Source: Stylophora pistillata
Lineage: Eukaryota
Assembly (NCBI RefSeq): GCF_002571385.2
Contig: NW_019218081.1
Location: forward strand, 65,855 to 125,442
Direction: 5' to 3'
DNA: 59,588 nucleotides
Made by a program: the position numbers and the translations under genes. Below the pieces are notes generated by a model. It did not search any database and was not told the origin of the DNA. It saw only the letters and a list, made by a program, of their open reading frames with translations. Positions within the stretch are counted from its first letter, which is position 1. Each line of letters opens with the position of its first letter. Below are positions 24,301 through 28,390 of this stretch, in pieces.

Positions 24301-25193
24301 ATGGCACAATCATCACGAGGCACAGATCGTGTGGATTACATTGCACTAAATAATCTTTCTTCTGCGGATTTTGAAACAGGTTCGAAAGGCAAAAGGAAAT
24401 ATAAACCTGGGGCAAAATTATATGAAGTGGAGAGGCTTGTCACCAAGTGGAAATCCTCGAATAAAAAGGTGCAAATGAATTCAAATGAAGCTCAATGATT
24501 ATCTATTGGGTTCATTGTTTGACCGCAAGGGCTAAAATGGCACTCTTATTTCAATTTTATACAGGATGAAGAGTATCTAGTAAAGTGGAAAGATTGGCCG
24601 CCTTAGACAAGCTCTTGGGAGCCTTCTACCCACTTGTCTGATGAGTTAATCAGGTCAAATGAATTTTGCAATAAGCTAAATTGAATAAATTATTGGTTAA
24701 CTTTTTACCGTGGCCTTTGAAACAATAATTTTAATTTTTTTCTCTCTAAACTAAATCTCGCAGGGGTTACTCTTATCGAAACATCAGTGCTGAACGACTA
24801 GACAAGGCTGCTGTTGTTTTCATTGAAGCAATATTAGGCATTCTCGAAAGTAAGGCTGTGAAAGCCACATACTCAGCAGAAATTCCAATTGATCACGATA
24901 TCCTTAGACATATATTTAGAGGTCGTGGAACTTTGCCAGGGGATGTGATTGCAATGGTATATGAAATCACTGATTTTAGTAAGCTCTGCCTTCCATCTTA
25001 TTGGTATTATTATTTAAATGAACTTGGGCAAGGTATTGCTGTAAGTTTCCACATTAAATTAAAACCAGTTCTTAAGTTTTCAAAGAAACGCTTCATCTTT
25101 TCTAATGGTAAACTTAAACAGGCACCCATGTCTCCAGTTGAAAACGTTATTATTACAGTGAATAGGAGGGCATGCCATAGATTTAATATTTAA
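24301..25193 (+). pseudogene. Spliced chromodomain gene, join(24301..24468,24565..24653,24764..25193), with one in-frame TAG
   Basis: LYEVERLV...EEYLVKWKDWPP*TSSWEPSTHL is a chromodomain with a Y/W/W cage. Two GT-AG introns keep the frame into the 24858-25193 ORF. TAG at 24604-24606. Confidence 0.8.
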
Positions 25194-25898
25194 TCCAATA
25201 TAAGAATGAACAATAACACTGTTATTGTTATTACAATTTTTAAATGAAGTTTTTTTACATCTAGTAACTCATGAAACAGAACTGTAGCAATAAAACAATG
25301 AATTAATTTTTTCAAGTCTGGAATGAAAATAATTCAAATATAATTATGATATAATATACTGTCAACTTAATATAGACATAGTGTTAATTATGCTTGTAAG
25401 AAAATGTCTCGGTACATTTTATTTTACTCATTTCATCAAATCTATTTTTTAATGTGGAGGGGGCTGGGGTCAGCTATTATCCTGAATTAATTAGATGGAT
25501 TGCTAGCTAGCTTGAACAAAATACTTTTGCCAGAGATGTAGAGAAGTGAAACAGCCATTTCTATTATAATATGAAAGTAATGTTAAAGAAGAAACTCAGG
25601 TTAAAATGGTTTTAACCTGGTTTGATTATAGATTTCTTTGTATCAACATAGATAATAATAATTATTATTTTTATCACTATTCATTGCCATGGAAAGAAAT
25701 TGAGAATCAAAGCAGATGAAAACCATTTTAGCCTAAATTTCTCTGCCACATTTACATTGTTAATGTTAAAGGCTCACTGGTAATTTTTCAGAAAATAACG
25801 TGACTACATCTGTATCTTACAACTGTTTCTAATCCTATTGAATTACAGTCAAATGGCTTGTTTAATCTGAGTTCTTTGCATAAATTATGCTGACTCAT

Positions 25899-28390
25899 TC
25901 ACTGGGCCTTTTTTAGCACCTCAATTAGCTCACAATTTTTAAATTTTGCTAGCCCCTTTGCTTGAATTTTCTTTGTTCTGATCCTCTCACGGAGTTGAAC
26001 CATGTTAAGTTTATCGAGATCTTCCTCATTGTGATCCAAACCTGCACTACAAGGGCCTGGTTCTTGGTCAGATGGTTCTACAAAAGTTACTTGTGATCAT
26101 TGCCTCTTTTTTCTAGATTGAACAATGCCTTGATTCCAGTAGCAATCCTGTTTCTTTTCATATTTTCGCTTCTCTCTCTCATTGCCTTGCAATGACAGTT
26201 GTCATGATTATATTCCAGAAGTAGAACATTTCTAGCAGCATCCCACTTATTAGACTTCTGAAAAAAAATTTTTTTTTTGCATCATCATTTTTTTCTACAC
26301 CTTGCCCTGTGAACTGCTTAATTGATGAAAATGTTTTGATGACAAGTGGCACATGGTAGGCCAATGATTGCATATAAGGTGTGACTCATTTCCATATTTT
26401 ATCCTTTTGTCAGCAAGTGAACAAAACAGATTGATGAATTTCTTCCCCCTTTCTGAGACCTCAAGGTACTTTTCAGCATTTGTGTTGTAATCATTTATGA
26501 TTTTGTAGAGATCATTGAGGTCAGACCACAGCTGAATTACAACGTCTTTCGTTTCAGGGAAGAGGATATCTTTTGGTTGCAGTTGTGCTGGCAGAAATTC
26601 CATCTGCCTTTTCTTTTTATCTGATCCAATTAGACTTGTCCAGTCATAAGATCCACTTCCTTTCCCATCTACATTCTTCTTTTCCCAGATGGAGAAAGGA
26701 ATTCCAATACCATTTACAGCCTTGACAAGGGACTCTAGGTACACACCTTTCTTCTCTCCCCTTCCCTTGTTGAGGTCAGCATTGCTGTTCCTTTCCATAA
26801 CTTCAGTTATTAAGTTTTCAAGTAGGCGGTCTGTTTTTCTCATCATCAGGTGGAGTTCATCCAAAAAGGGGTAGCATAGATTTAATATGGGACAGAGTCC
26901 TTTTTGTTTCCATAGAGGTAGTGCTCAATTGGTTTTTCAGTGTTCCATCTATACAACTTGTGAATAAAGCACCAAAGACAAGCATAAGTAGATGAGGCTC
27001 GACTAAGACCCATGGCCATGAGAAGAAACTTATAATCTCCTCCCAGAAACATTTCAATTTTCACTTCTTTCCCATAAACCTCAAATGAGCCAGCTTACAA
27101 AGCAGTGTTGATTTCATCGATGGCTGATCTGAAAGAGTTTACCATGGTGACATACTTTTCTGGGCCATTTACAACTGCTATGGTCCTGTTGCCTTTAGAG
27201 GACATCACCTTTTCACCAGTTTGAAGAAGACAAAAGGAGAGTCATAAAATTAGTGCTCCTGGACATTTTTGCCCCATCACCACTGATCTTGACTTTCACA
27301 GGTTCATTTAGGTCATAATATGGATCATTTTTAAAAGTTCTCTCACATGCTCAATCAATGTCTCACAGAAAGATATCTGGGCACCAGGGTACTGGCATGG
27401 AATTGTGCAAATCTTGTTAAGTTAATTTCGCTTTTGTTTGACTAAATAAGACTTTGGGAGGTCATCACACATGGTAAGTTCATGATAAAGTTCATCACTT
27501 GCACAGAATTTATCTAAGAGAAAGAGGACTTGTTCCAGTTTTTCATCTTCCTCATCTGTATGGCTGGTTGGTGGGGGGTGTGGCAGACTTCTCATTGTCA
27601 AAATGAAGCATGTATGGTGTGCCATGTTTGGCATCCACACCTTTGAGGCAACTCAATTCCAATCCATACGACTTCACGAACCAAAGTGCCACTTCTACTC
27701 TACTTTTTAGTACTTTTAGTTTCCTGGACCTCTGCCTTTGGCAAAGATCACCCAGCTTCGTCCCAGTGCACCCTACCTCCCCAGCCTCGCCTTGAGCTTA
27801 TTTATGTGCTGAAACAACTCATTGTTTAGTCCTCTTAACTAAGCTATTTCCTCATCTTTTTCCTACAGGTGTTTGTCCATTTCTTTCAGGGCTTCATTCA
27901 TTTCTCTCACTAGTTCTTTCTTTTGATCTTTCAGGTCTTCAAGTTTTTCCTTCCACTCCTGGATCTCTTGTCTTGAGCCCATAAGTTCTTCTTTAACACC
28001 TTTGATACAAGTTCATGTTTAAAAATGCTAACTGTATGACTTTTTTGATAGAGTTGATTCCTTTCTCAACTATTCTTAGCATTTCTGTACTTGCTTCTTA
28101 CTGACCCGGCTTGTTTTGACAAGTTGTTATTGATTTGTTGCCCTGACTCTTGGCTTATTCAGGTGCAATGCCCGGGGATCAAATCATTAACAAGAGTGAT
28201 GTAGTTAGAGTGTTCACTTCAGGATTGCTCTTGTCGATGTTGCCATGCCATTCTTTTAGGAGAAAATACGGTCTTTTGCCTGACAAGGCAATCTGAGATT
28301 CGTCAACATCCTTTCAGCTGTGATAATTTTTTGCCACAAAGATTAGCCACAGCTTTTTGTTACTCACTATCGCTTAATAAATCAGACATA
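25899..28390 (-). pseudogene. RAG1/Transib-related (CMC-Transib clade) DDE transposase, decayed
   Basis: In order: coiled coil, VKISGDGAKM (D), FLGGDYKFLLMAMGL..YACLWC (D and CxxC), DELHLMMR, YMQSLAYHVP and FTGQGVEKN (E). The C-terminus is SAP/HeH-like. Many frameshifts; the 5' limit is approximate. Confidence 0.7.

Follow-up and report, generated by a model that had tools for sequence, protein, structure and literature searches.

A decayed DNA transposon of Stylophora pistillata in which a RAG1-fold transposase gene converges on a chromodomain gene

In a stretch of 59,588 nucleotides from Stylophora pistillata (NCBI RefSeq assembly GCF_002571385.2, contig NW_019218081.1, positions 65,855 to 125,442 of the forward strand; referred to below as the window, in whose numbering bare coordinates are given), a small spliced chromodomain gene ends close to the stop codon of a decayed DDE transposase gene that is read from the opposite strand. 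The initial annotation, made from the letters of the sequence, had proposed that the two genes form one RAG1/Transib-like transposon, with the chromodomain protein as an accessory or chromatin-targeting partner. The locus raises the question whether such a two-gene element exists, to which group of transposons it belongs and what the second protein may do in it. The best overall explanation, which we consider quite probable, is that the locus is a dead copy of a family of RAG1-fold transposons with two convergent genes, one encoding a transposase with a RAG1-type DDE active site and the other (open reading frame 2, ORF2) a chromodomain protein that may be a subunit of the system.

Positions 24198-29271 of the window form a single element of 5,074 bp between terminal inverted repeats (TIRs), which had escaped the initial annotation. 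The arms, 22 bp each with 19 of the 22 bases matching, were located by an inverted-repeat search at 24198-24219 (ORF2 side, plus strand, CATTACCAGAAATCTGAGACAT) and at 29250-29271 (transposase side, minus strand, CGTTACCAGAAATCCGAGACAT when read inward), and the flanks outside them are contiguous in the empty sites described below. The terminus CATNNCCAGAAAT (5'-CAT-NN-CCAGAAAT…) adjoins ORF2 at more than 15 other loci of the S. pistillata genome, and a degenerate TIR 21-mer was matched exactly at 184 sites of the 398-Mb genome, whereas its reversed control had 0. The TIRs of the family are 21-22 bp long and have the form 5'-CATNNCCAGAAAT…ATG-3'; in every copy and species examined the termini read CAT[T/G/C][A/G]CCAGAAAT, and not CAC, the type raised as a question in the initial annotation. 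Four other assemblies contain complete elements with this terminus at both ends: those of Pocillopora verrucosa (L063, 4,593 bp, the ends of which are the exact divergence points of independent metagenome contigs), Dendronephthya gigantea (L061, 5,115 bp, TIR 21/21), Saccoglossus kowalevskii (L062) and GCA_949826985.1, which holds two complete copies (L068 and L069). The window element is an old, dead copy of a family of autonomous cut-and-paste DNA transposons.

Both genes of the window copy lie at the coordinates first given, and their structures agree with those first described. ORF2 lies on the plus strand and totals 228 codons in three exons, all four splice sites being GT/AG. Exon 1 (24301..24468, GT donor at 24469; homologous exon in the intact copy L035) encodes an N-terminal tail and the first half of the chromodomain (…KLYEVERLVTKWK…), exon 2 (24565..24653, 89 nt) its second half (EEYLVKWKDWPP*TSSWEP…), and exon 3 (24764..25193, coding to 25190, stop codon 25191-25193) a conserved C-terminal domain of 140 residues. 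The sole defect is a TAG (24604-24606) at the position of a Trp in intact copies. The transposase pseudogene occupies 25899..28390 of the minus strand, with the ATG at 28390 and the last codon at 25902. Its reading is split among three frames into 15 or more pieces, with at least nine frame changes and at least four in-frame stops. It starts MSD, as in the intact relative P0001 (852 aa), and is colinear with residues 1-852 of this protein, of which the piece-by-piece comparison covers 32-852. The motifs quoted earlier (KISGDGA, GGDYKFLLMAMGLSRASSTYACLWC, DELH and YMQSLAYHVP...FTGQGVEKN) are all present. On the minus strand KISGDGA, with the first catalytic Asp, lies at about 27290, the second Asp and the C(2)C motif at about 27040-26960, DELH at about 26860, and the H…H motif and the Glu at about 26370-26300. 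Between the two stop codons there are 705 bp (about 700 bp in the original estimate), as compared with approx. 210-300 bp in intact copies. This spacer contains an inverted repeat (25590-25742) with 72-nt arms, 74% complementary, and a 9-nt loop, which is possibly a small secondary insertion.

The pairing of the two genes recurs throughout the family. In S. pistillata 24 of the 34 ORF2 matches lay within 4 kb of a transposase match, and 24 of the 25 ORF2-transposase pairs were convergent with fixed spacing, across subfamilies whose ORF2 domains are only 25-45% identical. Wherever both ends are known, both genes are inside the TIRs. The same convergent layout inside the TIRs was seen in Pocillopora (L063, with a 220-aa Pfam Chromo protein annotated as the neighbour), in Dendronephthya (L061, with a 224-aa gene in this place), in L068 and L069, and in Saccoglossus (L062), where an ORF2 homologue (E 3.5e-7 in a small custom set) stands, in the same orientation, between the right TIR and the transposase. 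The pair is a single mobile unit across subfamilies and phyla, from other anthozoans to a hemichordate, just as had been supposed from the window copy.

The searches were made with fragments of the window transposase and with natural intact relatives. The latter are 812-868 aa long and common in the S. pistillata genome; homologues occur across Anthozoa and in Saccoglossus, the named ones all being called 'uncharacterized protein', and an all-against-library search returned 4,253 representative proteins at E <= 0.001. In an alignment of 27 sequences the residues D377, D458, C477, C480, D536-E-L-H539, H700, H705 and E725 (P0001 numbering) were invariant, which provides a D-D-E triad (D377/D458/E725) and the zinc ligands C(2)C (C477-C480) and H(4)H (H700-H705). 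Pfam searches with 27 diverse members found no transposase family, RAG1, Transposase_21 and KDZ included, and gave only a weak SAP-like helix pair at the C-terminus; eight window fragments and intact relatives likewise matched no Pfam transposase family, the matches being a weak C-terminal SAP/Rho_N one and coiled-coil noise. Single-sequence phmmer gave no match in the PDB. The family profile did find RAG1L of amphioxus (E 0.0023) and, at E 0.005 and weaker, RAG1, and it aligned the blocks GL.GA.S.Y.C..C and T.Y.H….HVP…G.E..N to their RAG1/RAG1L counterparts, reproducing the motif parallels to the RAG1 core that had been drawn in the initial annotation.

The AlphaFold2 model of the transposase had a predicted local distance difference test (pLDDT) score of approx. 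90 or more across most of residues 330-730. Foldseek matched it to RAG1 (5.5e-15), BbRAG1L (4.5e-11), HzTransib (2.5e-10) and the P element (6.5e-6). The structure comparison with RAG1 and Transib that had been proposed as a check was carried out with VIA, and the Z values were 27.2 for RAG1, 23.6 for BbRAG1L and 20.9 for HzTransib; the P element reached 14.9 and Hermes 9.4. In the RAG1 alignment, model residues 285-766 were placed onto RAG1 459-1008 with a root mean square deviation of 3.6 Å over 406 residues in the top row and 421-429 residues in near-tied rows. By structure and by profile alignment the core is of the RAG1/Transib type, the intact relatives being modelled with the RAG1 core fold. 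The first 330 residues are modelled as a small domain followed by a helix of about 75 residues (135-210), for which coiled-coil-type Pfam matches were obtained, and the 27-sequence alignment contained no conserved Cys/His cluster before residue 300. The layout of the protein (about 850 aa) is thus an N-terminal domain, a long coiled coil, the RAG1-type catalytic core and a SAP-like tail.

Two unusual transposase copies were noted. At the start of the open frame L011 304-2475 (C154:462165-464336), a CSCHF motif of THAP-like type and a region weakly matching HTH_Tnp_4 (E 2.8e-4) are in frame with the RAG1-fold core, and this copy is probably a chimera with a PIF/Harbinger-type element. At C1630:7786-9719 (L007, L010) one transposase segment is present twice, 1,361 bp apart, with frames of 850 and 486 aa, owing either to a tandem partial duplication or to an assembly artefact in a young copy.

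The chromodomain of the window gene was identified from spliced database homologues and from motifs in the single exons. Pfam Chromo (PF00385, cutoff 25.1 bits) matched the homologues from Actinia (P0121, 228 aa) and Pocillopora (P0126, 226 aa) and the transcript-derived P0130 with 45.9, 35.1 and 45.4 bits (E 5.5e-12, 1.3e-8 and 7.9e-12), respectively. The exon 2 motif YLVKWKG[WYF]…WEP is present in all the diverged subfamilies, and exon 1 gives a Y.VE.I strand. The aromatic-cage positions Y…W..W are kept in all subfamilies, the window exons (LYEVERL; VKWKDW) among them; we take them to be the Tyr/Trp/Trp positions of the cage as in HP1 and Polycomb. The C-terminal domain was modelled as an alpha/beta domain with pLDDT >90. 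A profile search of the PDB with this domain found no match, the best Foldseek E was 0.14 and the best VIA Z was 4.2 among 48,161 chains; the ESM Atlas returned for ORF2 only the family's own chromodomain clusters. The dN/dS of the exon 3 domain between copies was 0.12-0.28 (0.28 for the window copy against the C58 copy), and by this measure the second gene is under purifying selection. In exon 3 the C671 subfamily (L039) is nearer to Dendronephthya L061 (dN 0.24) than to subfamilies of its own genome (dN 0.45-0.67), which points to either ancient lineage sorting or horizontal transfer.

RNA reads were mapped to an intact copy of the C66 type (L035:1-2430). Both ORF2 introns were found spliced in the raw reads of one polyA RNA library, the intron ends being GT..AG on the gene strand: the joint 1923->2061 was covered by 24 reads with 14 start points and the joint 2149->2263 by 7 reads with 5 start points, and contigs from three further RNA-library runs contained one or both of the joined forms. 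Exon 2 defined in this way is 89 nt in L035, the same length as in the window. The 3' end of the transposase gene was read from the opposite strand at approx. one tenth of the ORF2 depth in one polyA library. In the C66 and C118 copies, assembly gaps (N) start right at the ORF2 ATG.

The window copy was inserted into an older IS1595/ISXO2-like repeat, which is present in many copies, flanks the element at 23600-24197 and 29272-29480 (and beyond) and gives a Pfam DDE_Tnp_IS1595 match at 23769-24071 (E 2e-7). The genome was searched for empty sites with the left flank 23990-24197 (208 bases) and the right flank 29272-29480 (209 bases), and the evidence for the target site duplication (TSD) was taken from the coordinates of the flank matches and from loci of other species. 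Each flank search had about 40 paralogous copies, 84-89% identical, among the matches listed. At no fewer than 20 empty sites, such as C195 438367, C923 29256 and C3 916751, the left-flank match ended on the base where the right-flank match started. Since the flank matches share this one base, the insertion consists of the element and exactly one base, an A, the left copy of which is at 24197 and the right copy at 29272. The TSD is 1 bp, which in sequence terms is the same as the blunt insertion of an element with an extra A. A nested insertion in L068 was read independently of the window flanks: a full element (3294-8717) lies in another family member, 115 bp from the ORF2-side end of this host (host parts 3179-3293 and 8718-9572), inside the host ORF2 exon 1, and the host ORF2 resumes at 9123-9572. 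The interrupted exon reads from the ATG through the chromodomain to the GT donor only when exactly one junction base is dropped. The flanking bases were identical (A/A) in four of the six copies with both ends, and no direct repeats of 2-8 bp were found at these six. A CATG or 5-nt TSD just outside CCAGAAAT was also considered and rejected, the bases being inverted and not direct repeats. In L061 a 9-base copy of the terminus lies 20 bp outside the left end, which we count with the anecdotal hints of targeting.

Several further features of the element ends were observed. Pairs of TIRs that face inward over just 0.71-0.88 kb, in each case one of the CATCACCAGAAATCGGGGACA and one of the CATTGCCAGAAATTTGGGACA type, were found by the TIR-pattern search at C15:883716-884449, C69:686409-687148, C97:293259-293996, C216:90115-90861 and C326:89889-90633, and are probably non-autonomous derivatives of the family, similar to miniature inverted-repeat transposable elements. 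Directly inside the transposase-side TIR, all five complete elements of other species carry the block ACA-A-N-ATGGC (e.g. ACAAGATGGCC; L061 7382-7395, L062 6541-6552, L063 7271-7282, L068 3315-3326 and L069 3459-3470). It is similar to an initiator box of the YY1 type, such as human L1 has at its start, and could alternatively be an extended transposase-binding site or the first start codon. At the ORF2-side end the conserved continuation differs, being GACAGCCAGCGG or GACATTTNGAGCCC.

How the family is related to the known systems was examined trait by trait. The part of the initial annotation that called the transposase RAG1/Transib-like stands as far as the core is concerned: the family shares with RAG1, RAG1L of ProtoRAG and Transib a core that runs from the dimerisation/DNA-binding domain to the C-terminal domain, the D-D-E triad and the CC…HH zinc site, and it is structurally nearer to RAG1 (Z 27) than to HzTransib (Z 21). 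Membership in Transib or ProtoRAG in the strict sense did not hold. Instead of the 5-bp TSD of Transib (sensu Kapitonov & Jurka 2005), 1 bp was found at no fewer than 20 empty sites and by the restored frame of L068, and the termini are CAT throughout, in place of the CACRGTG heptamer that resembles a recombination signal sequence. Identity to RAG1 is only about 15%; Pfam RAG1 is absent from the 27 members, and the coiled coil and the SAP-like tail replace the N-terminal zinc-finger/RING region. As in ProtoRAG and vertebrate RAG, the catalytic gene stands tail-to-tail with a second gene that bears a histone-tail reader module; however, the partner is a chromodomain joined to a small alpha/beta domain and not the Kelch propeller of RAG-like elements, with or without a PHD finger, nor the Kelch propeller plus PHD finger of RAG2.

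The wider CMCT clade comprises EnSpm/CACTA, Mirage, Chapaev, Transib, Plavaka, ESTA as well as Lanisha, and its traits are two motifs, C(2)C and H(3-4)H, 5'-CA…TG-3' termini and a TSD of 2-5 bp (Kojima 2025, PMC12730594). The present family has the two zinc motifs (C477, C480, H700 and H705, between D458 and E725) and the termini (CAT…ATG), and some CMCT members (CACTA) also encode two proteins, but its 1-bp TSD is outside the range of the clade. Chapaev and Chapaev3 have an N-terminal Chapa zinc finger and CAC termini, with a TSD of TWA (3 bp) in Chapaev3 (PMC4411706, PMC3014272); none of these was found here. Of EnSpm/CACTA, neither Pfam Transposase_21 nor DUF4218 was detected at E <= 10 in the 27 members, nor were CACTA termini or a 3-bp TSD. 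A chromodomain ORF2 is reported for none of the lineages listed in PMC12730594. Lanisha was considered as a candidate name for the family; outside this source, biology papers carry the name only in two cases, both on the genome of the moss Ceratodon. By the traits given in that source the transposase fits into the wider CMCT clade, while membership in Transib proper, ProtoRAG, Chapaev and EnSpm is rejected by TSD, termini, partner and Pfam. Within the fold group of RAG1/Transib/CMC, the family stands as a distinct variant with two genes and an unusual TSD.

Two more distant systems offer partial parallels. Chromoviruses (Ty3/gypsy) likewise combine a DDE-type strand-transfer enzyme with a chromodomain, which directs integration into marked chromatin; their chromodomain is fused to the integrase, whereas here it is encoded by a separate spliced gene of a cut-and-paste element with a RAG1-like enzyme. 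PIF/Harbinger DNA transposons, too, need two genes, the second encoding a small protein that aids the transposase, but their transposase has an unrelated fold, a DNA-binding protein of Myb/SANT type is the partner and TWA is the TSD.

On these grounds a mechanism can be proposed. The transposase would dimerise through its coiled coil and bind the paired TIRs, and cutting and joining would proceed by RAG1/Transib-type DDE chemistry with a 1-bp stagger at the target. The chromodomain of the ORF2 protein would read methyl-lysine histone tails, either the transposase or the ends of the element would be touched by its C-terminal domain, and the protein would steer or license integration in marked chromatin. 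We think the chances evenly balanced that the ORF2 protein is a required or helper subunit acting in this manner; it would then correspond in function, though not by homology, to the PHD finger of RAG2 and to the chromodomains of chromovirus integrases. A complex prediction for full-length P0001 with the cognate ORF2 C-terminal domain, in which alignments were not used, scored 0.00 and counts neither way.

Other explanations of the gene pair have to be weighed against this proposal. If the window is viewed as a single locus, the much better preservation of ORF2 (one stop codon) as compared with the transposase might suggest a host gene that lies beside a transposase relic by chance. This explanation is refuted by the recurrent pairing inside the TIRs, which is found 24 times in the genome, in a constant orientation and at a constant spacing, and in four further species, and its probability is negligible. 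It is a more serious, though still rather doubtful, alternative that the element belongs to a catalogued family of CMC/Chapaev/EnSpm type in Repbase or Dfam, whose second ORF is already on record. The zinc motifs (C(2)C and H(4)H) and the CA..TG ends, which define CMCT in PMC12730594, agree with it; moreover, the family is so large that curators are likely to have met it. Against it, the 27 members had no Pfam transposase match, the Chapa zinc finger, the CAC terminus and the 2-5-bp TSD are missing, and every named homologue is called uncharacterized. Full-text literature searches yielded no DNA transposon with a chromodomain second ORF, in line with the initial annotation, which knew of no such family; Repbase and Dfam lie outside this comparison, and the novelty is for that reason provisional.

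It may also be asked whether ORF2 is a regulator instead of a targeting subunit, that is, a brake on copy number, or a recruiter or mimic of heterochromatin proteins that leads to self-silencing or serves as an HP1/Polycomb decoy. The roughly tenfold RNA depth of ORF2 over the transposase 3' end in the raw reads of the one polyA library, the resemblance of the chromodomain to an HP1/Polycomb-type cage (KWKGW) and the complex prediction, which gave no ORF2-transposase interface, can be cited for such a role. A pure inhibitor would, however, be expected to be lost often, whereas purifying selection has kept ORF2 in all full-length subfamilies and in more than one phylum, and we judge the regulator unlikely. 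The explanation as a two-gene transposon with a chromatin-reading subunit is to be preferred, although several points weigh against it. The N-terminus of the Saccoglossus ORF2 is divergent and has no clear aromatic cage, the chromodomain part of the ORF2 model was poorly predicted (pLDDT <50), and the C-terminal domain is without a recognisable fold relative. The flanking bases do not match in two of the six copies with both ends (L063 and L069), so the 1-bp TSD stands mainly on the empty sites of the window and one nested insertion. A preference for repeat-rich chromatin is anecdotal, coming from the nesting of the window copy and L068 in other transposons, and the binding of the ORF2 protein to the transposase and the need for it in transposition are putative.

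RAG1/RAG2 is the textbook case of a transposase with a chromatin-reading partner, and the origin of this partnership is still debated. We propose tentatively, and with somewhat more doubt than confidence, that the present family is an undescribed RAG1-fold lineage at superfamily level, distributed from Anthozoa to a hemichordate, which integrates with a 1-bp stagger and depends on a separate methyl-lysine reader, i.e. a convergent partnership of the RAG1 and RAG2 kind. If this is true, it would be a second, independent pairing of a RAG1-fold transposase with a histone reader, and this division of labour would be a recurrent solution. The natural intact and expressed copies would make it a tractable system for the steering of a DDE transposase by a reader subunit, and the 1-bp TSD would widen the known range of target staggers in this class of enzymes. 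The family is abundant and labelled only 'uncharacterized protein' in coral and anemone genomes, and its recognition would clean gene sets and repeat libraries.

A last observation concerns the surroundings of the Pocillopora element. Upstream of it, at L063 964-5510, there are a YqaJ/viral alkaline-exonuclease gene and a THAP/DDE_Tnp_4 (Harbinger-type) transposase gene, and because of these two genes the neighbourhood is regarded as transposon-rich.

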